A stretch of 64,000 nt of DNA from positions 186,001-250,000 of IMG/VR virus record IMGVR_UViG_3300045135_002615; one strand, written 5' to 3'. A program made the position numbers and the translations under genes. The notes under the pieces were generated by a model. It ran no database searches. It was not told the DNA's origin and saw only the letters and a program-made list of their open reading frames with translations. Each line of letters begins with the position of its first letter. Within the stretch, counting starts at the first letter, position 1. Of the stretch, positions 4,836-54,856 are shown piece after piece.

Positions 4836-4872
4836 CTGAGGTGCATGGGAGATATTCACATAGGTGGTCACC

Positions 4873-6492
4873 ATGAAGATAGCACATCAGATTTCAGACC
4901 TAGAGTTAAGACTCGCGAATCTTGAGAAAGAAGCGGGCATTGGATCATGGGTGGCAGAGTTCTTTGAAGACCGACCAACTTCAGCGGATTTGATACGGGG
5001 TAAGTACTTCTCTAAAGCTAACATCTCAGAGGTAAAGATAGATAACCTCATCTTGGACGGTAAAGACTTCAGGGGTGCTAACTTTCATCGCTCTTCAATG
5101 AAGTCCACCAAGGCAAAGGGAGCGTCTTTTAAGGGGGCGGGTATGTCGTGGGTAGACCTGAGTGGGTCTGTCTTTAATGGGTGTGACTTTACGGGCGTTG
5201 ATTTCAGGTTTGCCAACTTGAACAATGTCACGTTCAATGGGTGTTCCTTGAAAGGTGTGAAGCTCCACTCTTTAAGGGGTGCCGTCGGCGTTAAAATACT
5301 CAACAGCAATATAGAGGGCTTGACCATCATTGGAGGTGTTTTTAAGAGCCCTATACTCCCTCCCCTTAAGGGGGCATCCTTAAAGGGGGCTTCTTTTGAA
5401 GATTGTGCTCTTTCAGATGTAGAGAGTCCTGTCTCCTGTTCGTTTTACAATTGTGAGATAAATGGTCTGACGGGTGATGTCTTGAGTTCTAAGACGAATC
5501 GGTGTAAGGTTAAGGGTCTTAACCTTACCTCAGCCCAGAACACTCTATTTAAGGGTCTGATTGTGGAGGGTAAGGCTAAGATCAATAAGGGTGTTTCTCT
5601 TAGGTTCTCAGGTGTTCAGTTTATGGGTCCTAGTTTGACTCTAAATTTAATTAGTTCAGTGTTGTATGGTGTGACCTTTAGCAAGTGCTTCGTCTCCAAT
5701 ACCAACATCAAGGACTCAAAAGGAAAGATCGTTATCAGGAGTTGCGAGGGACTTGTTGATTTTAGAAACTGCTCTTTCCCGAACTCTCGGATCGAGAAGT
5801 GTAAAATATCAATGGGTGTCACTGACTTGGACTTGAGTGGTTCTCAGATTGTTAATAATGATCTGAGGTTCACAGGGGCTTCTGATTTAGATGTGACGGG
5901 TGCTGACCTTTCAGGCTCAGAGATTAGCGGGCTCATATACTCCGCAGAGATGAACCCCTCAGATTTTGATCAGGCTCTCATGTCTTTACGAGGTATTCTT
6001 GATGACCCAGGTACACTTAAGGGGTACATGGGTCTAGTCAAAACGATGCACCAAACAAAGGCGATCAAAGCAGAAGTCATTGAGAGAATGGAACGTCATT
6101 ATGACAAAAAGTTCACATCTCTCCGCCCTGAAAAGGAAGAGAAGCTCTTTGTGTTCATCTCTTATCTCAAGTATATAGACTCAGAGCTAAGCCTGATAAG
6201 AGAACTTAGTGGACCCCAACCCCATATTGAGAGCATTGAAAAAATGAATGACCTCCTTGAAGAGAGTACTTCAAACTCTCACAAGAAAGTAGACATTCTT
6301 TTAGGTATCTATCAAGACTATAGTGTACAAGAGCTCTCAGACCTCCTCACTGAAAGAGGGATGAGAAATAGATTACCCTCTGAAGGGCGATCTCTTGACC
6401 TCATATTCCTTAGAGTTGCTATGTTAGCTCTTAATGTTAATGAAAGAGAGCTCATCAAATATCTCAAGGAAGTCCGACCCCTATTTAAGTGA
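4873..6492 (+). CDS. Pentapeptide-repeat protein with N-terminal coiled-coil tag
   Basis: DFRGANF/SFKGA/DLSGS repeats; leader QISDLELRLANLEKEA. Confidence 0.8.
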   Translation: MKIAHQISDLELRLANLEKEAGIGSWVAEFFEDRPTSADLIRGKYFSKANISEVKIDNLILDGKDFRGANFHRSSMKSTKAKGASFKGAGMSWVDLSGSVFNGCDFTGVDFRFANLNNVTFNGCSLKGVKLHSLRGAVGVKILNSNIEGLTIIGGVFKSPILPPLKGASLKGASFEDCALSDVESPVSCSFYNCEINGLTGDVLSSKTNRCKVKGLNLTSAQNTLFKGLIVEGKAKINKGVSLRFSGVQFMGPSLTLNLISSVLYGVTFSKCFVSNTNIKDSKGKIVIRSCEGLVDFRNCSFPNSRIEKCKISMGVTDLDLSGSQIVNNDLRFTGASDLDVTGADLSGSEISGLIYSAEMNPSDFDQALMSLRGILDDPGTLKGYMGLVKTMHQTKAIKAEVIERMERHYDKKFTSLRPEKEEKLFVFISYLKYIDSELSLIRELSGPQPHIESIEKMNDLLEESTSNSHKKVDILLGIYQDYSVQELSDLLTERGMRNRLPSEGRSLDLIFLRVAMLALNVNERELIKYLKEVRPLFK

Positions 6493-9565: not shown

Positions 9566-10093
9566 ATGAGAGATAAGATTAGTCACCTAGAAGCCCGTAT
9601 TGCACTTCTTGAGCGTTCTTCTTCGGATCGCTTCCGTCCGAGTGATCCTGAGCCCGACCCTTCATGGCAACACACGTCCCCCAATGATATTGATGTACGC
9701 GGTCCCGCTGACCGCCCAAATGCGACACCTTCTGAACTGTGGGAGGAGATGAAAAACTACATGGTGGAGAATGGACTTGGTCGTGTTAAGGCTACGCCAG
9801 GCACTGTTTCCTTCTACCTCTTTTACTACCTAGACCCCGAACAATACCTAGACCCCGACCAAGCTAACTATTACCGAGGTCGCGAGCTTGCTGAAATCTT
9901 CGCCAGGATTGTCAGGAACAAAAGAGGATGGACTGACAGAGGATGGACTGCGAGGCAGCTTGGTGGGGACAAGGTACGGGTCACCAAAACCAAAGGTAGA
10001 GCTATTTACAGGGGTGAGCGTATCCATGTAGAAGGAGAAGCCATTTTCAGGGTCACTATCAAAAATGATTGGATCACCATCCACAAGCCTTAA
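9566..10093 (+). CDS. Hypothetical protein with coiled-coil tag
   Basis: MRDKISHLEARIALLER; AAGGAGG RBS. Confidence 0.8.
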   Translation: MRDKISHLEARIALLERSSSDRFRPSDPEPDPSWQHTSPNDIDVRGPADRPNATPSELWEEMKNYMVENGLGRVKATPGTVSFYLFYYLDPEQYLDPDQANYYRGRELAEIFARIVRNKRGWTDRGWTARQLGGDKVRVTKTKGRAIYRGERIHVEGEAIFRVTIKNDWITIHKP

Positions 10094-10103
10094 GGAGACA
10101 TTT

Positions 10104-10670
10104 ATGAGAGATAAGATTAGTCAACTAGAAGCCCGTATTGCACGTCTTGAGCGAGAGTCTAAGGAGAAGTATCCTTGGGACGATTGCATCAAAGATCAGA
10201 TGGAGCAGTACGGGGACAAAGAGACTGCTGAGAAGGTCTGTGGCAAGATCAAGGCACAGTCTCAGGGTAAGAAGGCATCAGATGCGGATCGAATGAATGT
10301 GTTCGTAGGCTCTCTCAAACAGCAGCTACCTCGTGACATCAAGATTGAGGTCTCTGTAGTTGACCGTGAGTCTCATGGCACTACTTATTCTGTTAGTATC
10401 TACCCTTTCAATCCGAATATCTATGATCGCATGGACCTTTTGCGTTTCAAGGGTGATCCAAGACGCTCCGCACCTGCCACCCCTGCGGCTAAGGCTTCCA
10501 ATCGTAAAGCTGCCAACGCTATTCGTAAGGCATTGAAGTTGTTCAATGATGACATTAGACTGCTCAATGACTATAGCTATGAAAAGCCAACTTTGAGGAG
10601 ACCAAGAGTTGGTCCAGCGTACTACGATGGTGTTGCACACGAGATTATCGTCCTCGCTTACAATGTCTAA
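10104..10670 (+). CDS. Hypothetical protein with coiled-coil tag
   Basis: MRDKISQLEARIARLER; small WDDCI...KVCG domain ending at KKAS; AAGGAG RBS. Confidence 0.8.
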   Translation: MRDKISQLEARIARLERESKEKYPWDDCIKDQMEQYGDKETAEKVCGKIKAQSQGKKASDADRMNVFVGSLKQQLPRDIKIEVSVVDRESHGTTYSVSIYPFNPNIYDRMDLLRFKGDPRRSAPATPAAKASNRKAANAIRKALKLFNDDIRLLNDYSYEKPTLRRPRVGPAYYDGVAHEIIVLAYNV

Positions 10671-12156: not shown

Positions 12157-12684
12157 TTATACCTTTAGAGGATTACCATCCTCGTCAAAGAGACGCTCTA
12201 CATCGTATGAGCCATCATTAGAGACACTCACACTCCAGAGGTCTTTGGTTGCTTTATGGATTAGTGTTGTTTCGGAAGCTGCTGTGAGTGACAACCCGTC
12301 TAGTAGTGAGCTTGGTCCTGAGAGCACAATGAAGTGATCATCAAGGTTAGCTACTCTCATGGAAGCAACACGGAGGAACTCATTAGGTATCCTTTGTATC
12401 TTGTCGTTCCCGTCAAAACGGACAAAGGACTCGCCGTCTAGTTGAGTCACATCGCCGTTTGCGGTTCTTACAGATACAATAGTTCCCTTAGTCCCTGCGA
12501 GTGGTAGTTGACCTGGGATCACCACGCCATTATTTGTGTGTGCTACCACACGGGTTCCATCTTCAAAACTTCTCTCTCGTATAGCCTTACGACCTGAGTC
12601 AGTAAGGTCTGAGATTTTAGTGTTAAGCACGGAGTCCATGCTTGCTGTCTTGAAGTTTGAACCGAAGATGATGTCGTCACTCAT
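12157..12684 (-). CDS. Putative virion protein
   Basis: KTAS, RVAS, RVAN sites; LIHKATKDLW; motif at 12724-12736; AAGGAG RBS. Confidence 0.75.
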   Translation of the reverse strand: MSDDIIFGSNFKTASMDSVLNTKISDLTDSGRKAIRERSFEDGTRVVAHTNNGVVIPGQLPLAGTKGTIVSVRTANGDVTQLDGESFVRFDGNDKIQRIPNEFLRVASMRVANLDDHFIVLSGPSSLLDGLSLTAASETTLIHKATKDLWSVSVSNDGSYDVERLFDEDGNPLKV

Positions 12685-16549: not shown

Positions 16550-17050
16550 ATGTGGAGGAATGGCAAGGGAGATAAAGTGACCCTTACAGATGTTCTCTCA
16601 TTTGTTGAGAAGGCTCATGCAGTAGGGTCACAGGTAGTAGTTGGTACAGATAGTCAGCCTTTCAATCATGGCACTTTCTCTGTGACCGTAATCGCATTCC
16701 TCTCTAGTGATCGCTCCGTGCATGGCAGGTACTTTTACTTAGAACACTCAGAGCTGACTAAACACCACAATCTTTTTGAGAGGATTTATCACGAGGTGAG
16801 CCTCACGATAAACCTACTACATGAGATCAAGCATTTGACCCCTATAGAGGACATAGAAGTCCATATAGACGTGAGCCCTGATAATGGGAAAACAAAGACC
16901 TCACGTTGGTCAAATACCCTTGTTTCGATGGTTAGAGGGTATGGCGTTCGTGAGGTCTGTGTGAAGCCTTCTTCTTGGTGTGCTTCTAAGTTAGCAGATG
17001 CTTACACCAAGAAGAGGAGTATTCGTGTACTGAGGAACAGGGCTCAATAG
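16550..17050 (+). CDS. RNase H-fold YkuK/DUF458-like protein
   Basis: VVGTDSQ, ERIYHEV, IEVHID, KP..W.AS..AD. Confidence 0.8.
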   Translation: MWRNGKGDKVTLTDVLSFVEKAHAVGSQVVVGTDSQPFNHGTFSVTVIAFLSSDRSVHGRYFYLEHSELTKHHNLFERIYHEVSLTINLLHEIKHLTPIEDIEVHIDVSPDNGKTKTSRWSNTLVSMVRGYGVREVCVKPSSWCASKLADAYTKKRSIRVLRNRAQ

Positions 17051-17460
17051 TCGAAGTCTAGGGAGATCTCCAAGAGCTTGATCTCATCCTCTTCGAGAGG
17101 CTCACCGAGTACACTGATCACCATCTCGTAACGGAAGGTCACATCGGGGTCTCCCTCTTCGGGGTAATCTTCACTGTACGCTTTGACTTCCATAGAGTCG
17201 TCATCAGCCCAGTTAACCCAACCAAGATCCTTTAATCTCTCCTTCTTGATAAAGGAGAGTAGGTCTTCAAGGCTCTTGAACTTCTGCTTACGGTACATGG
17301 TGGCATAATCCTGCTCATAGTCACCGCTACCATCAGGGGAGAACCTAGTCTCTACGGAATAGACTGAAACCTCGAACCTATCCTTAGCGGGTTTCCCCCT
17401 AAGAGTCTTTTTTTCAAGGCGGGCAATGCGGCTCTCTAGCTCACTTATCTTGTTGATCAT
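17044..17460 (-). CDS. Acidic hypothetical protein with coiled-coil tag
   Basis: MINKISELESRIARLEKK; motif at 17495-17507. Confidence 0.8.
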   Translation of the reverse strand: MINKISELESRIARLEKKTLRGKPAKDRFEVSVYSVETRFSPDGSGDYEQDYATMYRKQKFKSLEDLLSFIKKERLKDLGWVNWADDDSMEVKAYSEDYPEEGDPDVTFRYEMVISVLGEPLEEDEIKLLEISLDFDY

Positions 17461-24775: not shown

Positions 24776-24868
24776 GTATTCACTCCTTGAGTGGGTTATA
24801 CAAGGCTTATGGTGTTAGTTTGTTTATGAGGGTCTTGCTCATAAAGGTTTGTTTTTTTGGAGATGACC

Positions 24869-27346: not shown

Positions 27347-27397
27347 TTCCTTTTCAATAGTCCTTTTATGAGTGGGTGTAATAAAGTGGAGGTGTCT

Positions 27398-27910
27398 ATG
27401 CACAATAAGCGAGCCACGACTTATGTCGATTACCAAGAGAGAGCCAAAGGCTTCAATGTAGGGCAACGTGTGTTCCCTTACACTGAGGCTAAGCCTACTA
27501 AGGCGGGCGTTGTTCTTGCGGTATATCCTGCTATCGGGATGGTTGATGTGCAATTCCCACATGGCACTACACGCTTGCCCGTTGAGGACTTAGTGATCGA
27601 CACCTCTAACGATAGTGAGTCTTATCCCGTAGAAGAGAATAGCCTCCCTAGTGGAGATGCTGTTGTACCTGTGACAAGCAAGACAGCTAAGAGAGTTGCT
27701 TCACGTCACATGGAAGCTATGTATTGGGCTGCGGTAGATCGCAAGTATCGTCTCTGTAGGGGTGAAGACCCCACACGACCTTCTTGCCCCAAGTGTAAGG
27801 AGACTATGGGCACCTCCATCTACAAGAGAAGAGAAGGTGTCAGCGAGAAACTTCTTGTTTGTCCTTCTTGCCTCTTTGTCATTAAGAACACAGACTTGAT
27901 CGGAGGCTAA
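27398..27910 (+). CDS. Head-module protein with SH3-like and Zn-ribbon domains
   Basis: GGAGG RBS; CPKC...CPSC; KRVASRH; motif at 27357-27369. Confidence 0.75.
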   Translation: MHNKRATTYVDYQERAKGFNVGQRVFPYTEAKPTKAGVVLAVYPAIGMVDVQFPHGTTRLPVEDLVIDTSNDSESYPVEENSLPSGDAVVPVTSKTAKRVASRHMEAMYWAAVDRKYRLCRGEDPTRPSCPKCKETMGTSIYKRREGVSEKLLVCPSCLFVIKNTDLIGG

Positions 27911-27911
27911 A

Positions 27912-29354
27912 ATGGCATTCTTAAGATACGCTAAGGCTAATGTAGTGCGACCTGAACTACATGGTCTTGAATGGGATAAGGTCAGGGTCGCTTCGGGAGA
28001 CAAGAAGCTAAACAAGTCTCTCAAGAAGCAAGCTGAGGATATCCTTGGAGAGCCCTTCACACCCGAAAGATTCCTCCTTACTCACTCTACTATTGTTTGC
28101 TCCGTAGACGCAGTCTCTCCTCCCAATACCAAAACAGGTAATGTTGTTGAAGAAGGGGCTAAGGTAAATCGCAAGTATGCCGATTACAGAGTGTCCCCTG
28201 AGACGGATAAGTTTATCAACAACAACCTTGATTGTTGGTCACGGGGGGTCATCAAGAAGTCTTATCAGACTTTCATTGGGGCACATAACTTCGTGGAGCA
28301 CATCCAAGTTGAGGAACTCTCTAAAGGTCGCATTATTGATGCTGTTCTCCGAGATATTGGTGATAGCCTCTATGTGGATATACTTGTAGCCACAGACCGC
28401 AAGCACAAGGACCTCGTTGATCAAATCGTCTCAGGTAAGATGAACTCCATGAGTATGGGTTGTAGCGTCGAGTTTACGATTTGTACTAAATGCGGGCACG
28501 TTGCCGCTGATGAGACTGAGATGTGTCCCCATGTTAAGTATGAGAAGGGCAACACCTTCTTTGACGAACAGGGTAATAAGCATAGGGTTGCGGAGCTCTG
28601 TGGGCATGAAGATGTAGGAGGTACCGCAGGTGTGACCTTCATTGAAGCCTCATGGGTTGCCACGCCCGCATTCCCTGGTGCAGTAGCCCGCAACACCATT
28701 GAAATCCCATCAGATGAACCTGCTAAGGTTGCAAGCCTTAATGAAGTCCCTGAGAAGTGGATTGCCAAAGCCGCCTCTCTTGTTGACTCTCCTTGGTATG
28801 ACCCTAATGGAGTGCTTAGTAAGGTCGCAGGTCCCTTTGACGACATGGGTGGTGATGACGATAGTGACGGAGATAAAAAAGAAGAAAAGCCCGACCCCTC
28901 ACTACTCTCTCAACTTGAAGGTGTCTATGAAAAGGCGGTTATTGATCGTTTCCGTCAAAAGCTTGAGAATGAGATGAAGAAGGAGAAGGCTCAGGAAGCC
29001 ATGAACCCTCCTATCAGTAAGTCTACTGTCGAGCAAAATGACACCGTCATCAAAGAAGGTCATGTGAACGCAGCTCAGTATCTTAACGCTCTAGAGATCG
29101 CTGTTAAGACCGCCTCTTCAACTGAGGAAGCTGTGTTGAACCTTACTTTGGTCAACAATCACTATGGGGTTAATATCCCTCCTCATGTGTACAAGCTGGC
29201 TTCTAAGCTCGGCTCAACCTCAAACCATAAAGATGTAGATAGTTTCCTTAAGAAGGCTTCTACTCTACATGGTAAAATCTTGTCTAGTTCTGAAGCTCGC
29301 ATCCTAGTTAGGCTAGCTAAGATACTCTCAATCAACTCTTTCGGGCAGAGGTAA
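27912..29354 (+). CDS. Prohead (capsid maturation) protease
   Basis: FVEH, SMSMGC, Zn insert CTKC..C.H, FIEASWVATPA (HK97/assemblin-type pattern); position before scaffold and capsid. Confidence 0.8.
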   Translation: MAFLRYAKANVVRPELHGLEWDKVRVASGDKKLNKSLKKQAEDILGEPFTPERFLLTHSTIVCSVDAVSPPNTKTGNVVEEGAKVNRKYADYRVSPETDKFINNNLDCWSRGVIKKSYQTFIGAHNFVEHIQVEELSKGRIIDAVLRDIGDSLYVDILVATDRKHKDLVDQIVSGKMNSMSMGCSVEFTICTKCGHVAADETEMCPHVKYEKGNTFFDEQGNKHRVAELCGHEDVGGTAGVTFIEASWVATPAFPGAVARNTIEIPSDEPAKVASLNEVPEKWIAKAASLVDSPWYDPNGVLSKVAGPFDDMGGDDDSDGDKKEEKPDPSLLSQLEGVYEKAVIDRFRQKLENEMKKEKAQEAMNPPISKSTVEQNDTVIKEGHVNAAQYLNALEIAVKTASSTEEAVLNLTLVNNHYGVNIPPHVYKLASKLGSTSNHKDVDSFLKKASTLHGKILSSSEARILVRLAKILSINSFGQR

Positions 29355-29389
29355 AGTCCTGCCCCGTCATGTTAGAAAGGAATTGCCTT

Positions 29390-31036
29390 ATGTCTAGGTA
29401 TGACCGTTCAAATAAGTCTCGCAGGGCTATGGCTACACGTCGCCGTCGCTTTGCAAACTCTTCTATCCCTGGCTCAGACAACCTAGGTTGGGAGCACTTC
29501 GGACACCCCGCTGCTGGCGAGCAACCTGCTGTCGATGAGTATGGTTTTGATAGCGAGTTCGGTGAGGGCGTTCGCAAGGGTCCTTACAGCTCTGGTGCCG
29601 CTCCTGCCTCTTATGGTTGGTCTCCTGAGCACCCCGCTGCTTCAGACATGGTTCGTGAGGATTACGCCATGACTGAGACCCTCCGTAACGAGAACCTCAA
29701 GAAGGCTATGGAGCGTAAGGCAGCTAAGTGCATTGAGATTGCTGAGTCACGCCTCGGTAAATATGCGAGTGCCTCTGAGATTGAGGATCTTGCTCTTCGT
29801 TTCATGGATCTCCCCAACAGCGTTGTGAATGGTCGTGTCGCTTCTCTTCGTAATGCTGATAACGCTGTTCAGATGAACACAGGCTATGAGGGTCTTGACT
29901 TCACAGGTCCTGGTAACGCAGGTTCTGATCTTGAGGCAGACGAGTGGATGTCTGACGAGTTCGAGGCTGACATGGACATGATGGCTGATGAGCTTGAGGC
30001 AGACGAGTGGATGTCTGATGAGTTCGAGGCTGACATGGACATGATGGCTGATGAGTTCGAGGCTGATGAGCTTGAGGCTGACATGGACATGATGGCTGAG
30101 GACATTGAGGCACATGATCTCTTTGACGAGTATGACCTCGATGGTGATGACCTCATCTCCCGTGATGAGTGGGGCGGTAGCATGGGGGCGTTCGATGTAA
30201 TGGATCTTGATGAGGATGACTTCCTCTCTCGTGATGAGGTTGCTATGGGTCTAGGTGACTCTTTCGGCAACCCTTCACAGGCGGAGATGCTCGCTGAGGA
30301 GATTTCTAATCTTAAGCAAGCTAATGCCCGCCTCGCCCGTCAGGTTCGTAAGCTTGCCGATAACGCAGTTCAGCAAGCTACGGACTACACCGTAGAGGAC
30401 TTCAGCGATCCTATCGACACTACACCTGAGTCTGAGGAGGGTGAGGGCACTCCTACTCAGCGTCTTGCCCGTCTTGAGCGTCTCGCATCTGTACTCGCAG
30501 ATTACATGGGAGAGCTTGAGGCTGAGGAGGAGATGTCTGACATGAATGATCCTCACTACGGCTACTCAAAGGCAGCAGGTGATGAGCCCGAAGAGGAAGA
30601 GGGTGACGATGAGGATCTTGAGGAAGATGCCAAGAATGTTGCAGAGACCGCAGAAGATCCTAAGTCTGAGAAGAAGGCTTCTGAGGATCTTGAGGAAGAG
30701 GAGGCTGAGGAAGAGGAGACTGAGTCTGAGAAGAAGGCTTCTGACGACAACATGGGTCTCGATGTAGAGGACGGTGACATGGAGATTGATCCTCGTCTTG
30801 CTTCTATCTTCACCGCTTCTGACGAGGAAGAGGCTGAGGAAGAGGAGGCTGAGGAAGAGGAGACTGAGGGAGAGGAGCCTAAGTCTGAGAAGAAGGCTTC
30901 TTACAAGCCCGCTATCAATACTCGTCAGGCAAGTGTTAAGACCCTCGGTAACATCAGCCGTGAGGCTTCTGCTTCTTCTGATGAGCTCAGCAAGCTTTGG
31001 GCTTCAGCTCCTGACGTGAGCAAGTTCTTCGGTTAA
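29390..31036 (+). CDS. Capsid scaffolding protein with EF-hand pair
   Basis: Highly acidic, coiled coils, between protease and capsid genes; many [KR]xAS sites. Confidence 0.75.
   Translation: MSRYDRSNKSRRAMATRRRRFANSSIPGSDNLGWEHFGHPAAGEQPAVDEYGFDSEFGEGVRKGPYSSGAAPASYGWSPEHPAASDMVREDYAMTETLRNENLKKAMERKAAKCIEIAESRLGKYASASEIEDLALRFMDLPNSVVNGRVASLRNADNAVQMNTGYEGLDFTGPGNAGSDLEADEWMSDEFEADMDMMADELEADEWMSDEFEADMDMMADEFEADELEADMDMMAEDIEAHDLFDEYDLDGDDLISRDEWGGSMGAFDVMDLDEDDFLSRDEVAMGLGDSFGNPSQAEMLAEEISNLKQANARLARQVRKLADNAVQQATDYTVEDFSDPIDTTPESEEGEGTPTQRLARLERLASVLADYMGELEAEEEMSDMNDPHYGYSKAAGDEPEEEEGDDEDLEEDAKNVAETAEDPKSEKKASEDLEEEEAEEEETESEKKASDDNMGLDVEDGDMEIDPRLASIFTASDEEEAEEEEAEEEETEGEEPKSEKKASYKPAINTRQASVKTLGNISREASASSDELSKLWASAPDVSKFFG
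29933..30100 (+). repeat. 63-bp tandem repeats (EADEWMSDEFEADMDMMADEL)
   Basis: Units start at 29933 and 29996, plus a partial third. Confidence 0.9.
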
Positions 31037-31187: not shown

Positions 31188-31775
31188 ATGGCTCTACTTG
31201 GACAAGCTAGTGGTGGGTTCACTGAGAGCAGCTCTGCTCTGCGTATTCTGCACGTTGGTGTTCGTAACACCCTCGGTCAGCTCACCGCAGATAGCTTCAC
31301 TCAGTCTAACCCCAAGTTTACAACCGATGTTGACCGCATCTCAGCCGCACCTGGCCTTCTAACAGGCGTCTTCGGTGTCCTTAGCGGTTCTATCGCCTTC
31401 ACTCGCGGTGACGAGGGTGCGAGCTTCCACGGTGGTCCTACCGCCGCAGCAGGTCGTGCTCACACTGAGCGTGTTCTCGGCGTGTTCATCAACAACGCAA
31501 GCGGTAACGCTTTCGAGAACCAGCCTGGCGTTGCAAGCAACAAGGGTCCTTATGTCTCTGCACAGGGTAGCTACGCTAACCGCCTCTATGAGACATCTCA
31601 GACCGGTGCTGATGTTGCTCTTACCTATGCTTCAGGTGACAGCCTCTACGCTTCTATCAATGGTTTCCTTACCAATGACACCAACCAGCGTCACACGGAT
31701 ACCACTGAGATCGCCATCCTCAAGATTGCTCCCGACTCTACGTCTGACGAGCTAGTTTACGACCAGCGTATCTGA
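31188..31775 (+). CDS. Capsid decoration/cement protein
   Basis: Gly/Ala/Ser-rich, VLGVFIN...ASNK, immediately upstream of the capsid gene, biased codons. Confidence 0.7.
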   Translation: MALLGQASGGFTESSSALRILHVGVRNTLGQLTADSFTQSNPKFTTDVDRISAAPGLLTGVFGVLSGSIAFTRGDEGASFHGGPTAAAGRAHTERVLGVFINNASGNAFENQPGVASNKGPYVSAQGSYANRLYETSQTGADVALTYASGDSLYASINGFLTNDTNQRHTDTTEIAILKIAPDSTSDELVYDQRI

Positions 31776-31795: not shown

Positions 31796-32674
31796 ATGAG
31801 CAATACCGTAGATAACAGCGTTAAGAACAAGATCATCAGCGACTTCATCAAGACCCCTCAGGGTCGTGCTAAGCTCGCTGCTTCAATGACTCAGCCCCTC
31901 CGCCTCCGCCGTGACTATACATCAGTCGGCCGTAAGACCTTCCAGGTCGAGCAGCTTCCTGATGGAGCACTCCCCATCTACGACAAGGATCCCGATGTGA
32001 CCGCATTTGTCGTTGGTGAGGAAGGCGAGAACATCCTCGCTATCACCAAGCCACGCCGTGTGATCTTCCCTCTCTTCGAGATCGCATCTAACCCTGAGAT
32101 TCCCCTCACACAGATCAAGGAGCGTAGATTCGACCTCATCGAGCGTGCTCAGGATCTCGCTAGGGCTCAGATTCAGGCGGCTGAGGACGAGCGTGTGTTC
32201 GCTATACTCGATGCCGTTGCAGCTAACGGCTTCGACAGCGTTGCAGGTCAGACTAACGCTGACATCCCTGTCATCGCTCCTCTCAATGGTGCTGTCCTCG
32301 CTGACGCATTCGCACAGATCGAGCGTCACGACCTTCGCGTTGCCCGCGTATTCATGAACGCTCGTGACTACGCTGACATCCGTAAGTTCGGCCGTGATAT
32401 TCTCGACATCGAGAGCCAGGCTGCTCTCCTCAAGACTGGTCTTCAGGCTACTCTTTGGGGTGCTCAGATCATCACATCACGTCTCGTGCCTGTCGGTACG
32501 GTGTACGTCTGCTGTGAGCCTGAGATGTTCGGACGTATCCCCGTTCGTACTGAGCTCACCGTCCTCTCTGCTGACGATCCTAAGGCTCGTACAATTGGCT
32601 TCAGCGTCTTTGAGAATTTGGGCATTGGTGCCTACAACCCTCGCGGTCTAGTCCGCCTCACTGTTACTCGCTAA
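31796..32674 (+). CDS. Major capsid protein (HK97 fold)
   Basis: 292 aa; strongest codon bias; module position; GRAKLAASM..PLR...DY..VGRK, WGAQI, C-terminal NPRG; followed by a terminator. Confidence 0.88.
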   Translation: MSNTVDNSVKNKIISDFIKTPQGRAKLAASMTQPLRLRRDYTSVGRKTFQVEQLPDGALPIYDKDPDVTAFVVGEEGENILAITKPRRVIFPLFEIASNPEIPLTQIKERRFDLIERAQDLARAQIQAAEDERVFAILDAVAANGFDSVAGQTNADIPVIAPLNGAVLADAFAQIERHDLRVARVFMNARDYADIRKFGRDILDIESQAALLKTGLQATLWGAQIITSRLVPVGTVYVCCEPEMFGRIPVRTELTVLSADDPKARTIGFSVFENLGIGAYNPRGLVRLTVTR

Positions 32675-34299: not shown

Positions 34300-34815
34300 A
34301 TGAGACACTTAACAGCAAGTCAGAAGATCGCTCACCTTGAGCATCGCCTCGCTCGTCTTGAAAGAAGAGCTACGCATTGGACTGATGTCTACCATCCGAG
34401 TGAGATGGTAGACGGCTACGTTGATGATATGGGCTACGAGAAGTACCCACCCAGCTATAGCCAAGGACCGGTATGTGACTCTATAGCAAGAGAGATGAGT
34501 CGCCGCCTGAAAAGGAAGGGTTATAATATCCAACATATGCCTGATTGGGTTGGGTATAGGATTCACCTCCCTTTGAATGGGATCACTTATGAGATGATAA
34601 ACTCAGATACTGATCCAAGTCTACCTCTCTGTAAAGAGTTAGTTCTCCAGGTAATGAAGGACGCAGGTCTTAAGGGTCATGTGTACTACAGGAGAGGGTC
34701 TCACTACTACAGGAAAGAGCTTGCGGGGGGTCGCTGTCTCCTTAGTATTAGTTGCTCACAAGATGAGGGTCTGAGCTTTGATGTAGACAGGGTGATAACC
34801 CGACGTAGGAGATAA
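34300..34815 (+). CDS. Hypothetical protein with coiled-coil tag
   Basis: GGAG RBS; MRHLTASQKIAHLEHRLARLERRA. Confidence 0.8.
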   Translation: MRHLTASQKIAHLEHRLARLERRATHWTDVYHPSEMVDGYVDDMGYEKYPPSYSQGPVCDSIAREMSRRLKRKGYNIQHMPDWVGYRIHLPLNGITYEMINSDTDPSLPLCKELVLQVMKDAGLKGHVYYRRGSHYYRKELAGGRCLLSISCSQDEGLSFDVDRVITRRRR

Positions 34816-34868: not shown

Positions 34869-35243
34869 ATGTCCATGAGACACTTAACAGCTAGTCAAAA
34901 AATCGCTCAACTTGAATCCCGTATCGCCCGTCTAGAGAAGCAAGCCTCTTTGAGAAGAGGTCTCGACAGGGAGGAGGAAACCGTCTTAGATGAAGTAATC
35001 CACCACTACAGACTCAGGCCACGAGACTATGAAGATGTCGAAATTAGTATTGAGGATCAGGTAGGGCGTGGGGAAGATAGGATCGTGCTCTATGAGGTGT
35101 CTCTTTTCAAAGAAGACGGGGATAGCTTTACTTGCTATGTCCTTTATGACGCTTACGAAGAATTGGTGGAAGGGTTTTACGATTACCAAGATGATTATGA
35201 AGCCCAAAGAGCCTTTGACTCACTAGTAGAGCGACACGCATAA
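34869..35243 (+). CDS. Acidic hypothetical protein with coiled-coil tag
   Basis: MRHLTASQKIAQLESRIARLEKQAS; motif at 34823-34835. Confidence 0.8.
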   Translation: MSMRHLTASQKIAQLESRIARLEKQASLRRGLDREEETVLDEVIHHYRLRPRDYEDVEISIEDQVGRGEDRIVLYEVSLFKEDGDSFTCYVLYDAYEELVEGFYDYQDDYEAQRAFDSLVERHA

Positions 35244-36035: not shown

Positions 36036-36418
36036 TCGGGTTCTGTACCCTCATCTTCAACAGAAGCCTCAGCTTCCTCAGAGGGAGTTGGGGCTTCTTC
36101 GTTTTCTGAGAACAGGGACGCCATCATCTCAGCCATCTTATCTTCGTCCATATCTTCCATTCCCTCGCCCCCAAAGAGACCCGCAAGGGGGTTATCTTGA
36201 CCTTGTAGCATCTCCTCGATGCCACCCTCTGTCTCGGCAGCCTTCATGAGCTTCTCCATATCAAGGTTTCCACCCATAAGGAGCTTCATCATCTCCATGA
36301 TGTCGTTCATGCCGAGTGGCTTCTCAAGCTCTTTACGCTCACGGGCTTTACGCTCCTTGCGGCGTTGCTTGATACGGATCTTCTTCTTGTGTGCGTTACG
36401 TTGTTTCTTGTTCATCAC
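36023..36418 (-). CDS. Hypothetical protein with basic N-terminus and Met/acid-rich C-terminus
   Basis: AAGGAGG RBS. Confidence 0.7.
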   Translation of the reverse strand: MMNKKQRNAHKKKIRIKQRRKERKARERKELEKPLGMNDIMEMMKLLMGGNLDMEKLMKAAETEGGIEEMLQGQDNPLAGLFGGEGMEDMDEDKMAEMMASLFSENEEAPTPSEEAEASVEDEGTEPDQQV

Positions 36419-36494
36419 ATACCTCCTTATCGGTGTCTTGTCTTATACCGATAGTATAAAGAGGTATATGGCAACACAGTACGGAGAGCGAACA

Positions 36495-37094
36495 ATGATA
36501 GAGATTAAGATAGGAGATTGCGTAGATCGCCTCAAAGACCTAGAGGACAACTCCGTTGACGCAATCATCTCAGACCCACCTTATGGTGTGAAGTATATGG
36601 AGAGTGGGTGGGACGATATAGGAGAAGGCTCGCAACAGAGAGAGTGGCACAGAGCTTGGTTGAAGGAAGCTCATAGGGTTCTTAAATGTGATGGTGTCCT
36701 CAAAGCGTTCTCTAGTGCTAAAACCCTGCATCATTTAACCTCTGCTATGGTCGAGGTAGGATTCGTAAACCTCTTAGTCGAGGCATGGGTTTACACAAGT
36801 GGTATGCCGACAGGAAACTACGATATGGCTAAAGGCATCGAGGCAACTATCCTGTTTGGAGACTCGAATAAATCAACATTCAAAAAACTTAAAGGGACTC
36901 GTAAAGAGGGCAAAACGGGGTATGCCAAACTTAGAGTAGAGCAAGGTACTAGAGCCACAGATTATGGTCTTTCATCTAGTGCATTTGACCTTGAGCCTCA
37001 AACTAAAGAGGGATCTCTTTACATGGGCTATGGTACTACCCTTAAGAAGTCATGGGAACCTATTTGTATCGGGGTTAAGAGATGTCACTCTTAA
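36495..37094 (+). CDS. Split methyltransferase, catalytic (DPPY) subunit copy A1
   Basis: SDPPY ... GYGTTLKKSWEPI; no FxGxG motif. Confidence 0.85.
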   Translation: MIEIKIGDCVDRLKDLEDNSVDAIISDPPYGVKYMESGWDDIGEGSQQREWHRAWLKEAHRVLKCDGVLKAFSSAKTLHHLTSAMVEVGFVNLLVEAWVYTSGMPTGNYDMAKGIEATILFGDSNKSTFKKLKGTRKEGKTGYAKLRVEQGTRATDYGLSSSAFDLEPQTKEGSLYMGYGTTLKKSWEPICIGVKRCHS

Positions 37095-43883: not shown

Positions 43884-44993
43884 ATGAACTTTCTACTACC
43901 ACACTCTGAGTATGTTAAGAGAAGGTATGCCTCAAAGCATATGCCAACTAGACAGATGTCCTTAATCGCTGTAGCTCAACTTAAGGGTCTAGACCGTCAA
44001 GCATCTATTATAGATGACCTGAAACAGTTTAATCTAGGTGCTTGGTGGGATAAAAAGTACGAAGAACTCTCAGAGAAGAAAAAGAGATGGCTCGAAAACG
44101 TATCGTTTGAAGGCATTGAGTTCATAGAGACAATCAAGAAGCCCTTTGTGACGACTTTGATTAAGACGATATCCTCTTTTATGACGGGACCTGCGTTGAA
44201 CTGGGTTTGGAAGGGAGTTTATGAGGCAGTCGCAACAAGATTGTTCCCCATTTGTCAAGATAGCTTTAGGGCAGGGGCCGTCTATAGAATAGAGATGGGG
44301 ACTACTATAAGGGTGAACGCATCTGAGTTAAGATCTCAAAAAATAGCCTACGACTATTGGAAGATGGGTTGGGACGACGCAAATAAAGTCCTATCCAAAG
44401 GTCACCCTATGAGAGCTTCTCAATATGATAAACTCTCAAAGAGACAAGTGCGAGATATTGAGTCAAGGCTCATCAGGGAGATCAAGGAACTCTTCCTAGT
44501 ACACTTCGTTAACAACATAAAGTACAACTTCGTTGATAACCCTCTTGGTGTTTGGAAGATGGTTAAGCACAACTGGCTCAAGGAGAAAGCTAAAGGGAGG
44601 GGTTTCTTTTCAAAAGTGATCGGGGTGCTACCAGGTATCGTTTTTGGTCTTTTTAAACTTGCAGCATGGTTTATCTTCTCTAAGGTGCTCGCCGCAACAG
44701 GAGGTGTACTAGGCGTTATTCTCTTGATAGGTAAGACCGTCACAAGTTTCTTGATCCCAACTATCCTACACTATATTACGGACGCTTGGTCTAAGTTCAG
44801 GTATGGTGAAGCTGTCTCTGAAGATATTAAGAAAGAGAAGTTTGACTCCGAGAGTAAAATGAAGCTTCAAAAGAAGATCGAGGAGAAGGCACTAGAAGAA
44901 AGAGGTCAGTTGTTTGACAAGGTGAAATCAAAAGCAGTTGGCTTTTGGAGTGGTGAAGAAGTTCACCCTAATGCCCCACTTAACGAAGATTAA
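43884..44993 (+). CDS. Putative virion protein with hydrophobic helices, paralogue of 41325
   Basis: M[ND]FL leader, RYAS, RQAS, SF..G, G[YW]W/YW..GW, hydrophobic block. Confidence 0.75.
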   Translation: MNFLLPHSEYVKRRYASKHMPTRQMSLIAVAQLKGLDRQASIIDDLKQFNLGAWWDKKYEELSEKKKRWLENVSFEGIEFIETIKKPFVTTLIKTISSFMTGPALNWVWKGVYEAVATRLFPICQDSFRAGAVYRIEMGTTIRVNASELRSQKIAYDYWKMGWDDANKVLSKGHPMRASQYDKLSKRQVRDIESRLIREIKELFLVHFVNNIKYNFVDNPLGVWKMVKHNWLKEKAKGRGFFSKVIGVLPGIVFGLFKLAAWFIFSKVLAATGGVLGVILLIGKTVTSFLIPTILHYITDAWSKFRYGEAVSEDIKKEKFDSESKMKLQKKIEEKALEERGQLFDKVKSKAVGFWSGEEVHPNAPLNED

Positions 44994-44997
44994 AACT

Positions 44998-45642
44998 TTA
45001 GGAAGCTAAGAGCTCTTTTACAATTTGGTCGCAGGTAAGAGATCCTCTCTTCATGTCTACAAGGCTAATCTCAACCATGCGACCGTCCAAGAAAACTCTC
45101 AATCTAGGTCGGAATGGATGCTCAAGTACCATCTCACCACCTACTGCCACACCATGTCTTTCTAAGCGGCTCTTTATTTTATTAAACTGACTACTTGCTC
45201 TCTCCATAGCTATTTGAGCTTCAAAGTGTAATGTAAACAGTTTTTGTGTTCTACTTAAAGTCAAAGACCCTGAATCTAATGTGTGGGTGAGTACCATGCC
45301 CTTCACTCCGAAATCGACATGGACATCACCTCCTTCATTGGGTTGGCACACCTTACCTGCCAAAAGTATCGTGTGTCCCTTGTACAGCACTTTAGCGGAC
45401 AGGTGAAAGTTCTTGTCGTTCACTTTCACCTTTGCTGAATACACATCTCTTAGTGATTCCAATGTGGCTTCCACGTCACTTGCTATATCATCCCCTTTAA
45501 GAAAAAGGGGTATGTTTACAATCCCTCCCCTGTAGACTTTAAGTTCACCTTCAACATCTTTAATGTATAAGGCTGCCTTCTTCTCAAGGTGGCTGATCCT
45601 TTTTTCTAAATCATAGATTCGTTCCACAGCTGTCTTTCTCAT
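44998..45642 (-). CDS. Hypothetical protein with coiled-coil tag
   Basis: MRKTAVERIYDLEKRISHLEKKAA; AGGAG RBS; motif variant at 45680-45692. Confidence 0.78.
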   Translation of the reverse strand: MRKTAVERIYDLEKRISHLEKKAALYIKDVEGELKVYRGGIVNIPLFLKGDDIASDVEATLESLRDVYSAKVKVNDKNFHLSAKVLYKGHTILLAGKVCQPNEGGDVHVDFGVKGMVLTHTLDSGSLTLSRTQKLFTLHFEAQIAMERASSQFNKIKSRLERHGVAVGGEMVLEHPFRPRLRVFLDGRMVEISLVDMKRGSLTCDQIVKELLAS

Positions 45643-53245: not shown

Positions 53246-54856
53246 ATGTATCCACGTCGCCGTAGGCTGTCTCGCACAGCTTCATTTAATCGCGTTCGCA
53301 CCGCTTCAACTTCATTACTTCGTCAGCTTCACAAGATTGCGAGTCCTCAAGAGATTCATCGCAAGTACAAGGGCATCGTCTCTCAGTTCATGTCTGATAA
53401 GTATACTGCGATGGACGATGCTATCCATGATACAATCTTTGATCCTAATGAAAAGAAGCTAGGGACTCTCAGCCTTCGTGACCTCGTAGAGCTAAAGACT
53501 GAGCTCTCAGATGCGGTTGCCGAGCTTAATGATGCTTGGAACTCAGCTAAAGCTAATGCTCCTAAGATCAAGGCGATGCTTCAGAGGGAGATGGGTAGTG
53601 CCTCCGAGGATGACCTTGAGGTTCTTGAGGGGTACTATGACGAAATCCAAAGTTTCCTTCGTAATGGACACCCTCTTGCAACATACAACCCTTATGCTGA
53701 CTTCCTTGTGAAGATTGATGAGGAGATTGAGGAGAGGCGTACCGAGGGTGAGGACGATGCTAGGTGGAGACGTGAGCTCACCGAACTAATTGCTGACTTT
53801 GAGGATAGCTTGGCAGAGCTTGAGGTCATGGATAGAGAGGTTCGTAGCTATGCCGATCTTCGCCCTCTTAAGATGGTGAAGGTTGATGTTGATATGCTCC
53901 TTGACACTACGGGACTCGGATCAAGTTTCCCTGATCGCTATTCACGGGGCATACTATCAAGTATAAATATGGACGCCGCTCGTGCTTCAATCGCAAAGAA
54001 GAGGCACGAGCTGCTCAACCTCCAAAAGGCACTTCCAAGTGTCAAGGTCGTAGAGCGTAAGCTCAAGGAGTTTGAGAGCGGTGTTCGTGAGAGACATGAT
54101 CTCATCCGCCGTGCGAAAGAGGTTGATGCTCACACATGGCAGATGAACATTGGTCCTGATGCAGAGAAACTCAAGGGGAAGACCGAACTACTAGAGGCTC
54201 GTTCATCAGCTGTCAGAGCTGCAATTACGCTCTATCTGAGAGACCTCAAGATTTTCTCCATTACCCTAGCGGGTCAGATTACACGTCTTGAGAAGGTTTA
54301 TGAGTCATCTCGTGATGTTGAGATCAATGCGAACCTTGCTTCTGAGAGGAAGATTAAGTATTTGAAGTCTTCTCTCAGAGACATTCAAACTGTCCTCAAT
54401 CGTGGAGTAAAGTCCTCACGAGACCTTAAGGCTCTTACTGAGCGGTTTGAAAAGTTAGAGGCTCAGGCACAAGCAGGTGGGTCATCCGTGGTTCGTGAGA
54501 TTGCACATCAGCTTCGTGATACAAAGGCAGCTCTCAAGTCCGTTGTGGTCGATGAGGGACTCATGGGTAAGTTTAGAGGTCTCTTCTCTCGCAAGGCTTC
54601 TTATGAGTACATGGCAGAGATGGATCGTGTAGCCTCTGATATGGGTTACATGGGTTCAGACATAGACATGATGGCAGACGAGTGGATGTCTGACGATCTT
54701 GAGGCTGAATTCATGGGAGAGGATCTTGAGGCCGACTTCATGGCTGAGATGTATGTCGAAGGTGATGACTTCGAGGCTATGGAGGTGATGGCACCTCGCA
54801 GGGCTTCAATGAACCGTAGGGCTTCACGCCTCGCCCGTAGACATCTTAGGGGCTAA
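53246..54856 (+). CDS. Coiled-coil putative inner-head protein with scaffold-like acidic tail
   Basis: RTAS twice, KIAS, RKAS, RVAS, RRAS twice; DMMADEWMSD; motif at 53194-53206. Confidence 0.8.
   Translation: MYPRRRRLSRTASFNRVRTASTSLLRQLHKIASPQEIHRKYKGIVSQFMSDKYTAMDDAIHDTIFDPNEKKLGTLSLRDLVELKTELSDAVAELNDAWNSAKANAPKIKAMLQREMGSASEDDLEVLEGYYDEIQSFLRNGHPLATYNPYADFLVKIDEEIEERRTEGEDDARWRRELTELIADFEDSLAELEVMDREVRSYADLRPLKMVKVDVDMLLDTTGLGSSFPDRYSRGILSSINMDAARASIAKKRHELLNLQKALPSVKVVERKLKEFESGVRERHDLIRRAKEVDAHTWQMNIGPDAEKLKGKTELLEARSSAVRAAITLYLRDLKIFSITLAGQITRLEKVYESSRDVEINANLASERKIKYLKSSLRDIQTVLNRGVKSSRDLKALTERFEKLEAQAQAGGSSVVREIAHQLRDTKAALKSVVVDEGLMGKFRGLFSRKASYEYMAEMDRVASDMGYMGSDIDMMADEWMSDDLEAEFMGEDLEADFMAEMYVEGDDFEAMEVMAPRRASMNRRASRLARRHLRG

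Follow-up and report, generated by a model that had tools for sequence, protein, structure and literature searches.

Several viral head-maturation proteases provide a basis for comparison with the locus studied here. Herpesvirus assemblin (MEROPS S21; HSV/PrV UL26, HCMV UL80) cuts after a small P1 Ala that is followed by Ser, at a self-release (R) site between the protease domain and what follows and at a maturation (M) site about 20-25 residues from the scaffold C-terminus, and the latter cut frees the scaffold from the capsid protein (PMC4498786). The T4 gp21 prohead protease (Pfam PF03420, MEROPS S77) processes itself, degrades the scaffold and removes terminal propeptides, including the capsid targeting sequences (CTS), which are short N-terminal sequences shared by otherwise unrelated internal proteins (PMC5694885). 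The jumbo-phage enzymes phiKZ gp175 and SPN3US gp245 (MEROPS S80) have a three-residue P3-x-P1 motif and a preference for Ser at P1', and they process many head proteins, including the capsid and portal proteins, with several sites per propeptide; SPN3US gp245 cuts after A-X-E (PMC10052503).

The window analysed here is a 64,000-nucleotide stretch of a 296.6-kb jumbo phage genome. In a first-pass annotation of its sequence, [KR]-x-A-[SA] was proposed as the cleavage site of the prohead protease encoded at 27912, and this site was contrasted with those of the Glu-specific T4 and phiKZ proteases. This contrast was correct, but the closest parallel, the assemblin Ala-Ser sites, was missed. The protease gene and the predicted sites within it are as follows.

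27912..29354 (+), head-maturation (prohead) protease, 480 aa, with a catalytic domain at about residues 1-254, a disordered linker at 255-326, a long helix at 329-363 and a C-terminal helical bundle at 387-472
27984..27995 (+), RVAS25-28, predicted N-terminal self-processing site of the protease
28725..28778 (+), KVAS272 and KAAS286, predicted release sites in the disordered linker between the catalytic domain and the C-terminal domain
29106..29261 (+), KTAS399, KLAS428 and KKAS447, further motif copies inside the C-terminal helical domain

The 27912 product matched phrog_2774 (E 6.4e-26) and phrog_18299 ("head maturation protease", E 5.8e-15), a family that includes phage G gp19, Bxz1 gp95 and Tunturi_5 gp331. 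This family is very large: a tblastn search found 238 phage records, and 1792 representatives were found at E<=0.001 in 1.8 billion clusters. It includes phage G, the cluster C mycobacteriophages and many uncultured 270-540-kb phages. No Pfam family matched at E<=0.01, with only zinc-ribbon noise at E<=1, and no PDB sequence match was found. To check the fold, an AF2 model was built (pLDDT 80; domain 1-254 mostly >90). The predicted fold matched T4 gp21 (5jbl_A) at Z 11.1, with an rmsd of 3.3 over 148 of 165 residues. The VZV (Z 6.2) and HCMV (Z 5.0) proteases came next, no unrelated chain exceeded Z 5.4, and the top Foldseek hits were also 5jbl. Profile comparison with T4 gp21 failed (probability <1%; 0.3% by hhalign against a gp21 alignment). 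The catalytic residues (H130, S181, E245) are therefore inferred from manual motif matching only. The order of motifs, N-x-N-x-R / H / S-x-G / [DE]-A-x-W..P-A, matched that of gp21, and the residue contexts paralleled gp21 H85 / S140 / D168. H130, S181 and S247 were invariant in 63 diverse family members, whereas E245 was near-invariant among 42 close orthologs but was not listed at 90% in the wider set. Inteins in orthologs, which start at about 130 and 179-184, interrupt the invariant S181-M-G and H130 motifs.

All of the tetrapeptides listed in the first-pass annotation were found to be present. To determine whether their number exceeded chance, motif copies were counted genome-wide. [KR].AS occurred 118 times against 51.4 expected from composition, and within-protein shuffles gave 52.9 +/- 6.9 with a maximum of 69 (z about 9). 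Nine permuted or reversed controls of identical composition gave 0.62-1.30x. Only Ala before Ser was enriched, and only K (57 against 28) and R (61 against 23) two residues before the Ala; [LIV].AS was at 0.94x. By zone, 25 sites lay in the N-terminal 50 residues of proteins against 6.8 expected, 25 in the C-terminal 50 residues against 5.6 and 61 in the middle against 32.3, which corresponds to a terminal bias of 3.7-4.5x.

Two statements of the first-pass annotation required correction. Only Ser, and not Ala, was supported at the fourth position, since [KR].AA was not enriched (33 against 52.6). However, this cannot be read as specificity because Ala-Ala is depleted genome-wide at 0.59x; the likely cause, which is inferred, is DNA-level avoidance of GCNGC/GCWGC sites. 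In addition, the sites had been described as looking sparse in metabolic enzymes, but PHROG-annotated DNA/RNA enzymes plus terminase carried 4 sites against 3.8 expected, which is background. Tail proteins were only slightly above background (4 against 2.2).

The sites were concentrated in the head-assembly pair, in which the protease and the scaffold together carried 15 against 0.88 expected. The scaffold and the genes following it are as follows.

29369..31036 (+), scaffolding protein candidate, 555 aa, 28% Asp+Glu, with nine [KR]xAS sites plus RKAA
30134..30238 (+), pair of EF-hand-like calcium-binding loops in the scaffold (DLDGDDLISRDE, DLDEDDFLSRDE, 23 residues apart)
30959..31033 (+), REAS531-534 followed by the conserved C-terminal tail (consensus ...ELSKLWESAPDVSKFFG; window ...DELSKLWASAPDVSKFFG), a predicted maturation site that would detach the tail
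31188..31775 (+), 195-aa protein directly upstream of the capsid gene, with no motif copies, a probable decoration protein by position only
31796..32674 (+), major capsid protein, 292 aa, with no [KR]xAS

The scaffold carried RKAA116, KYAS131, RVAS156, RLAS371, KKAS435, KKAS455, RLAS476, KKAS508, RQAS519 and REAS531, that is, 9 [KR]xAS sites against 0.51 expected (p 4e-9). The protease carried 6 against 0.37. One of these (RVAS25) is near the N-terminus, ahead of the folded catalytic core, KVAS272 and KAAS286 lie in the disordered linker after it, and three lie in confidently predicted helices of the C-terminal domain, so that their accessibility is uncertain and cutting would need unfolding. 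The order protease, scaffold, 195-aa protein, capsid protein was found in the window and in all related loci that include the region, and the scaffold lay between the protease and capsid genes in all 40+ related loci. The calcium-binding loops gave weak Pfam EF-hand hits below threshold; at least one loop matched in 21 of 40 orthologs and the 23-residue-spaced pair in 18, often as canonical DxDxDGxIxxxE. The 195-aa protein had 0 sites in all 44 orthologs and occupies the position of phage G gp26 ("capsid decoration"), although no sequence match to the latter was found. The capsid protein matched phrog_2522 (E 1e-51) and was 88% identical to LR745208.1 and 38% to phage G gp27. It has a conserved KLAA at residues 26-29 (31871-31882) that reads KLAS in one related clade. 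The portal had 0 sites.

Other proteins in the window were also found to carry the motif.

53246..54856 (+), 536-aa protein of unknown function with three sites in the first 33 residues and four in the last 90, a predicted substrate
43884..44993 (+), 369-aa protein with RYAS14 and RQAS38 near its N-terminus, a predicted N-terminal propeptide
12157..12684 (-), 175-aa protein with KTAS12 and RVAS105

ORF 53246 had seven copies, at 10, 18, 30, 449, 461, 518 and 524, against 0.69 expected. Its ATG is preceded by an AGGAGA ribosome-binding site 6 nt upstream, and no family, fold or ortholog was found for it. No family was found for ORF 43884, which has one KLAA in addition to its two sites. ORF 12684 had 2 sites against 0.11 expected, and a 781-aa protein outside the window, near the terminase, had 8 against 0.81. 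In the first-pass annotation the sites were said to cluster at the termini of seven ORFs, but several of these have a single site: ORF 19559 has 1 AS plus 2 AA, and ORFs 23404, 27368/27398 and 41325 have 1 each. None of the other motif-rich proteins could be shown to be virion components.

The conservation of the motif in relatives was then studied. In two fully analysed related genomes, designated G004 and G005, the counts were 114 against 41.8 and 134 against 90.7, respectively, so that G005 showed only 1.5x overall enrichment. The scaffold and protease were among the three most enriched proteins in G005; in G004 the scaffold ranked second, while the protease (2 against 0.29) fell outside the top 14. 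In 40 non-redundant, fast-evolving scaffold orthologs, 265 sites were found against 27 expected (1-10 per ortholog against 0.2-1.2). R.AS (152 against 11.2) and K.AS (113 against 16.1) were the top gapped patterns, and the 211 distinct contexts show that the count was not inflated by shared ancestry alone. In 39 of these 40 orthologs, [KR]xA[SAG] was positioned so as to leave a C-terminal peptide of 21-27 residues, whereas scrambled motifs did so in 2-5 of 40.

Two protease sites flanking the catalytic domain were also positionally conserved. A site was present at the RVAS25 column in 40 of 42 close orthologs, and in 63 diverse family members this column had R 47, A 33 and S 25 / A 18. The KAAS286 column, which lies in the pLDDT<50 segment 255-296, was the best conserved, with K45/R14 at P3, Ala in 58 of 63 and S 32 / A 8 / R 7 at the fourth position. 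Phage G gp19 has KVAS248/KIAS274 and Tunturi_5 gp331 has KVAS265 at the same place. The three copies in the C-terminal domain were partly conserved (24/42, 16/42 and 5/42). The layout was also found in distant relatives, namely Tunturi_5 gp331/gp332, phage G gp19 and Bxz1 gp95, a 1370-aa protease-scaffold fusion whose last site is 17 residues from its end.

Considering these data, the 27912 product is probably a prohead serine protease that recognises K or R at P3, any residue at P2 (I, V, T, K and Q favoured), Ala at P1 and mostly Ser at P1', with Leu favoured at P2', and the cut is most probably between Ala and Ser. Inside the assembled prohead, the enzyme would clip its own N-terminal 27 residues and separate its catalytic domain from its C-terminal helical domain at KVAS272/KAAS286. 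It would cut the acidic scaffolding protein at about nine places, one of them the conserved site 22 residues from the C-terminus, which would detach the conserved, presumably capsid-binding tail. It would also trim terminal extensions from other, presumably internal head proteins, namely those of ORF 53246, ORF 43884, the 781-aa protein and paralog families outside the window. That the motif is cut at all, the bond that is cut and this sequence of events are inferred: no cleavage data were found for this phage or, as far as the searches reached, for any member of this protease family, to which no specificity was found to be assigned, and a protease-peptide co-fold gave no verdict. If confirmed, such a motif would allow mature ends and head cargo to be predicted from sequence in hundreds of jumbo-phage genomes.

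The predicted Ala-Ser site with its release-site and maturation-site layout resembles that of herpesvirus assemblin and, as far as the searches reached, has not been described for phages, and it bears on how far the phage-herpesvirus assembly kinship extends. However, P3 is Lys/Arg here, whereas the herpesvirus consensus appears to have Val/Leu/Ile at this position. The protease and scaffold are separate genes in this phage, and no similarity was found between the protease C-terminal domain and the scaffold. The third catalytic residue is probably Glu rather than His, the phage enzyme carries a Cys/His zinc-ribbon-like insert, and sequence similarity to assemblin is undetectable. T4 gp21, the best structural match, most likely cuts after Glu and not after Ala, and it has neither the zinc-ribbon insert nor the 190-residue C-terminal extension. 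In the phiKZ-type enzymes P1 is Glu, whereas here P1 is Ala and P3 is basic; moreover, those enzymes process the capsid and portal proteins, while here the portal has no site and the capsid protein has only the doubtful KLAA.

Other explanations of the motif appear unlikely. It could be functional without being cut, as a docking or assembly motif recognised by the capsid or scaffold or as a basophilic Ser phosphorylation site (R-x-x-S type); the RRAS and RKAS copies in ORF 53246 look like classical kinase sites, and several copies sit in predicted helices rather than loops. However, at the best-conserved sites Ser is the least conserved position (32/63, with A, R, K and G as alternatives, and A/G in Bxz1 and Tunturi_5), while Ala is nearly invariant, which is the wrong way round for a phospho-acceptor. 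The placement around the protease domain and just before the scaffold tail matches known self-processing layouts (PMC4498786). It is also unlikely, although the whole genome was not screened for further proteases, that the motif is cut by a host enzyme or a second phage enzyme, as may occur in phages that use host proteases for capsid and scaffold processing. The motif tracks this protease family across hosts as different as Acidobacteriota, Bacillus/Lysinibacillus and Mycobacterium, and it flanks that protease's own catalytic domain at conserved columns.

It is very doubtful that the N-terminal part of the signal is merely a by-product of a coiled-coil leader ([KR]-[ILV]-A-x-L-E heptads) shared by many proteins. 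[KR][ILV]A.LE did occur 34 times against 0.98 expected, and in G004 the first heptad reads K-[IL]-A-S-L-E and so counts as a motif copy. Nevertheless, only 2 of 118 [KR].AS copies in the window's genome lie in that heptad context, and the leader is absent from scaffold and protease orthologs, where the motif is strongest. Chance, composition or internal duplication is effectively refuted by the shuffles, the flat permuted controls and the replication in independent genomes and in distinct scaffold contexts, although three scaffold copies sit in a repeated SEKKAS unit, two paralogs share a triple C-terminal site and three KGAS copies in ORF 4864 are probably incidental.

The leader, about 25 residues long, was found at the N-terminus of at least 16 proteins, including the following.

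4864..6492 (+), pentapeptide-repeat protein (PF00805, E 5e-21) with the leader at its N-terminus (MKIAHQISDLELRLANLEKEA, followed by G); its three KGAS copies lie in or next to the repeat region (repeat hits at about residues 57-133)
9566..10670 (+), two adjacent leader-bearing genes, 9566-10093 and 10104-10670, both starting MRDKIS.LEARIA.LER.S
17044..17460 (-), 138-aa leader-bearing protein (MINKISELESRIARLEKKT...)
34300..34815 (+), 171-aa protein with the same leader (MRHLTASQKIAHLEHRLARLERRA, followed by T), its start moved from the mechanical TTG at 34177
34875..35243 (+), 122-aa protein starting MRHLTASQKIAQLESRIARLEKQA, followed by S, with the shared leader (leader HMM E 3e-13) ending in a KQAS site and a Shine-Dalgarno sequence before this ATG
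44998..45642 (-), 214-aa leader-bearing protein (MRKTAVERIYDLEKRISHLEKKA, followed by A)

Of 17 leaders inspected, 11 ended in LE-[KR]-x-A, out of register with the heptads, and 3 more in LE-[KR]-x-S; the following residue varied, with Ser in only 2. In relatives, [KR]xAS was found within 10 residues after the leader. This fits a leader removed at the motif, although it is only inferred that the leader ends at a protease site. It is possible, but only tentatively proposed, that the leader addresses at least 16 unrelated cargo proteins, including DNA-mimic-type pentapeptide-repeat proteins, to the prohead and is then clipped off at [KR]-x-A, in which case the virion would inject a large, modular set of proteins and the leader could serve as a tag for loading foreign proteins into capsids. 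Compared with the T4 CTS, the leader is longer (two and a half heptads, predicted coiled coil) and much better conserved, and its role in packaging is entirely inferred. The leader was found in 16 ORFs here and in 10 in G004, with every hit at the initiator Met. Seven genes start MRHLT[AT]SQKIA with a ribosome-binding site upstream; they are 76% identical at the DNA level, so conservation is at the protein level.

To establish the genomic setting of the motif, the single 296,642-bp contig of this jumbo phage was examined. Its head-assembly region contains the following genes (positions here and below are those of the window, bases 186001-250000 of the contig, unless marked as genome).
27912-29354, a 480-aa protein matching phrog_18299 'head maturation protease' and phrog_2774
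31796-32674, the major capsid protein, matching phrog_2522 at E 1e-51
Between these two genes lie an acidic 555-aa protein with no family, which was taken to be the scaffold, and a 195-aa protein. Protein-level relatives include an uncultured 485-kb phage (LR745208.1), Tunturiibacter phage Tunturi_5, Bacillus phage G and cluster C mycobacteriophages. Sixty-five IMG/VR loci carry orthologs at 37-76% protease identity, and these loci keep the gene order protease - scaffold - small protein - capsid protein, with the capsid protein remaining 84-97% identical. Upstream of the protease, an 829-aa highly charged protein (24857-27346) and a 180-aa protein (27368-27910) are in the same frame, separated by one TAA and 21 nt, and in many relatives they form one ORF of 1000-1340 aa. 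The 180-aa part has RVAS at residue 109.

Every tetrapeptide listed in the first-pass annotation was found to be present. To check whether their number exceeded chance, 328 ORFs covering 95% of the genome were called greedily. The pattern [KR].AS occurred 118 times against 51.4 expected from each protein's own composition, and three hundred within-protein shuffles gave 52.9 +/- 6.9 copies with a maximum of 69. Reversed and permuted patterns of identical composition gave 32-67 copies, or 0.62-1.30x. When one position was varied at a time, only Ala was enriched at the third position (118 against 51) and only K (57 against 28) and R (61 against 23) at the first, and Leu was favoured after the Ser (22 against 4.8). 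Ten proteins with three or more copies held 49 sites against 4.3 expected, and the rest still held 69 against 47. In proteins of at least 150 aa, the first 50 residues held 25 sites against 6.8, the last 50 held 25 against 5.6, and the middle held 61 against 32.3, whereas control patterns were flat. In an unbiased scan of terminal regions, R.AS was the second most enriched gapped triplet.

Two points of the first-pass annotation needed correction. It had allowed Ala as well as Ser at the fourth position; however, [KR].AA was not enriched (33 against 52.6). This says little about the enzyme because the Ala-Ala dipeptide is depleted genome-wide, to 0.59x here and 0.09x in G004, a related genome of 316 kb. 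The depletion tracks DNA-level avoidance of short GC-rich sites: GCGC occurs 0 times against 921 expected, GGCC 48 times against 921, and CCWGG and GCWGC are at about 0.35x (0.37x for GCWGC), while G004 has 1 GCWGC against 126 expected. Probably, this is restriction-site avoidance, with the Ala-Ala depletion as a side effect. Two DNA methyltransferase-like genes lie at 36219-37094 and 38336-40252. The first-pass annotation had also considered the sites sparse in metabolic enzymes. In PHROG-annotated classes, which cover only a minority of residues, DNA/RNA enzymes or terminase carried 4 sites against 3.8 expected, and tail proteins carried 4 against 2.2, so that these proteins were close to background and not depleted. 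The excess lay in the head-assembly pair (15 against 0.88) and in proteins of unknown function.

The distribution of the motif was then compared across 46 non-redundant related loci. Scaffolds carried 1-10 copies (expected 0.2-1.2) and proteases 0-5 (expected about 0.35), whereas the small protein upstream of the capsid gene carried none and the capsid protein almost none. In 40 scaffolds, R.AS (152 against 11.2) and K.AS (113 against 16.1) were the most enriched gapped triplets. The 265 copies, against 27 expected, occurred in 211 distinct local contexts, so shared ancestry alone does not explain the count. The conserved part of the scaffold was its C-terminus, ...VKTLGNIS-R-E/T-A-S-(4-6 residues)-ELSKLWESAPDVSKFFG. 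In 39 of 40 orthologs, a [KR].A[SAG] was positioned so that cutting after the Ala would release a 21-27-residue tail, whereas scrambled patterns did this in 2-5 of 40. It is noteworthy that the scaffold also carries a pair of EF-hand-like calcium-binding loops 23 residues apart (30134-30238, scaffold residues 256-290). At least one loop matched in 21 of 40 orthologs and the spaced pair in 18, often as canonical DxDxDGxIxxxE. A calcium-binding scaffolding protein would be unusual.

In the protease, the N-terminal site (R25-x-A27) was present in 40 of 42 close orthologs, and the site after the catalytic domain (K286-x-A288) was present in most. In 63 diverse family members, this second site read K45/R14 - x - A58 - S32/A8/R7/K3/G3. 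The basic residue and the Ala are thus much better conserved than the Ser, which is what would be expected if Ala is P1 and the bond cut is Ala|Ser, and which argues against Ser being a modification target.

Two related genomes were analyzed whole, and both repeated the pattern: 114 copies against 41.8 in G004 (protease 50% identical) and 134 against 90.7 in G005 (536 kb, 47% identical). The scaffold ranked second in G004, and protease and scaffold ranked second and third in G005. However, the G004 protease itself had only 2 copies against 0.29 expected. More distant relatives kept the layout with a looser last position. Tunturi_5 gp331 has KTAA33 and KVAS265, its acidic neighbour gp332 has nine K.A[SAG], and its 'DNA ejection protein' gp328 has fourteen. 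Phage G gp19 has KTAA43, KVAS248 and KIAS274. In cluster C mycobacteriophages, the protease domain is the N-terminal part of a 1370-aa protein, Bxz1 gp95, which lies two genes upstream of the capsid gene and is separated from it by gp96. This is a protease-scaffold fusion like herpesvirus UL26, with R/K.A[AGS] sites, the last of them 17 residues from its end, and with R/K-x-A-[AG] sites clustered near the C-terminus.

To determine what the enzyme is, sequence and structure comparisons were performed. Pfam and PDB sequence searches with the protease revealed nothing beyond zinc-ribbon noise. An AlphaFold2 model built on 63 homologs (pLDDT 80) showed a confident domain 1-254, a disordered linker 255-326 containing KVAS272 and KAAS286, a long helix 329-363 and a confident C-terminal helical bundle 387-472. 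The C-terminal domain had no similarity to the scaffold and was therefore not supported as a scaffold paralog. An exhaustive structural comparison placed T4 gp21 first (Z 11.1, 148 of 165 residues), and the varicella-zoster (Z 6.2) and cytomegalovirus (Z 5.0) proteases were the next related hits. Foldseek agreed. However, profile comparison with T4 gp21 failed, with both a single sequence and a 21-sequence alignment giving a probability of <1%, and the catalytic residues therefore rest on manual motif matching. The invariant or, for E245, near-invariant residues of the two families nevertheless appeared to line up by motif and order.

Probable correspondence of conserved elements between T4 gp21 and the predicted prohead protease, by manual motif matching
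Asn motif: N51-x-N53-x-R55 in T4 gp21; N103-x-N105..R111 in this protease
His: H85 in T4 gp21; H130 in this protease
Ser: S140-x-x-G in T4 gp21; S181-M-G in this protease
Acid: D168-A-V-W..P-S-A-P in T4 gp21; E245-A-S-W..P-A-F-P in this protease

In work on SPN3US, the gp21-type triad was given as His-Ser-Asp (PMC5694885). About 45 residues between S181 and E245, the presumed catalytic Ser and acid residue, carry invariant Cys/His (C184, C191, C194, C205, H207 and C230) and look like a zinc ribbon (28461-28607, protease residues 184-232); T4 gp21 has no such insert. Many orthologs of the protease are 860-1850 aa long because of one to three inteins, for example L059:7447-10056, L060:10001-12721, L063, and proteins P0010 and P0052, whereas the copy studied here has none. 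In these orthologs, Hint and LAGLIDADG domains begin at about residues 106-112, about 130 and 179-184, which is at the invariant NNNLD, H130 and S181-M-G motifs. Since inteins probably tend to sit in active sites, this supports the residue assignment indirectly.

Inside the prohead, the enzyme would clip its N-terminal 27 residues, free its catalytic domain from the C-terminal domain, which may be what tethers it to the core, chop the scaffold into pieces of roughly 10-215 residues (median about 25) while detaching the conserved scaffold tail, and trim terminal extensions from other proteins. This is the known logic of T4 gp21 and of the phiKZ-type enzymes (PMC5694885; PMC10052503). With the Ala-Ser pair and the release-site and maturation-site geometry, it would be closest to herpesvirus assemblin (PMC4498786). 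The differences are a basic P3 instead of an aliphatic one, the herpesvirus consensus probably being (V/L/I)-x-A|S, separate protease and scaffold genes, and probably Glu as the third catalytic residue. The literature searches, which included phage G, Bxz1/Myrna and Tunturi_5, found no cleavage data for any member of this family, and co-folding of protease residues 29-262 with scaffold residues 515-555 scored 0.02, which is not evidence either way. Therefore, the motif, which is statistically strong, is supported as the recognition site of this protease only as a prediction, refined to [KR]-x-A|S with Leu favoured at P2' and with A/G tolerated at P1' in relatives. Prohead proteases as such are known; what is new is the predicted specificity, in a large family for which the searches found none assigned.

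The other motif-rich proteins were also studied. Family, fold-atlas and ortholog searches with ORF 53246, the 781-aa protein, the 474-aa and 225-aa proteins and the paralog families gave no informative hits, and the presence of these proteins in the head is inferred from the motif itself. The 781-aa protein (genome 138126-140471) is encoded just upstream of the terminase large subunit (genome 141836-143695), is mostly disordered in the Atlas model (pLDDT 0.41) and carries 8 [KR]xAS plus 2 [KR]xAA spread along its length; it may be a second core or scaffold-like protein. Two paralog families lie at genome 147725-150665 and 23-3981. Three proteins of about 320 aa have an N-terminal leader (see below), and two of them also carry a triple C-terminal site (KTAS..RVAS..R[TI]AS), while the third has a single C-terminal site. 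Four proteins of about 320 aa at the genome start have one or two N-terminal sites. The portal (genome 156327-158036) has no site. The capsid protein has only a conserved K26-L-A-A in its N-arm (31871-31882, residues 26-29), which reads KLAS in the G004 clade and has KSAA/KLAA at the same place in Tunturi_5. It is a possible but unproven cleavage site, which may or may not be cut.

The terminal scan also revealed A.LE (46 against 10.1), and this led to a 25-residue, predicted coiled-coil N-terminal leader shared by many proteins, with the consensus M-R-H-L-T-A-S-Q-K-I-A-x-L-E-x-R-[IL]-A-x-L-E-[KR]-x-A. The pattern [KR][ILV]A.LE occurred 34 times against 0.98 expected. An HMM found 16 ORFs in this genome and 10 in G004 but none in G005, and every hit was at the initiator Met. 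Ten more ORFs lie elsewhere in the genome in addition to the following carriers in the window.
4864-6492, leader-bearing ORF
9566-10093, leader-bearing ORF
10104-10670, leader-bearing ORF
17044-17460 (-), leader-bearing ORF
34300-34815, leader-bearing ORF
34875-35243, leader-bearing ORF
44998-45642 (-), leader-bearing ORF
Seven genes begin MRHLT[AT]SQKIA, each with a Shine-Dalgarno sequence upstream. They are 76% identical at the DNA level with many synonymous differences, so the conservation is at the protein level. Two carriers are pentapeptide-repeat proteins (PF00805 at E 5e-21 and 2e-114), and the rest are unknowns of 122-420 aa.

After the second L-E, 11 of 17 leaders continue [KR]-x-A and three more continue [KR]-x-S, which is one residue out of heptad register. 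In relatives, the leader is followed within ten residues by one or two [KR]xAS copies. This looks like a T4-style capsid-targeting sequence removed at the protease motif, although without evidence for packaging it remains only a possible tag. The leader module was not conserved in scaffolds, where one weak instance was found, in the window only, so that scaffolds carrying the module were not supported as its binding partner. The leader does not explain the main finding, since only 2 of the 118 motif copies in this genome lie in the heptad context.

Other content of the window, at 47276-47347, 47716-47788, 48386-49801 (-), 6434-9031 and 62997 onward, comprises tRNA-Glu(TTC) and tRNA-Lys(TTT), a GroEL-like chaperonin, a ribonucleotide reductase large subunit, and the start of a 3139-aa tail-fibre protein.
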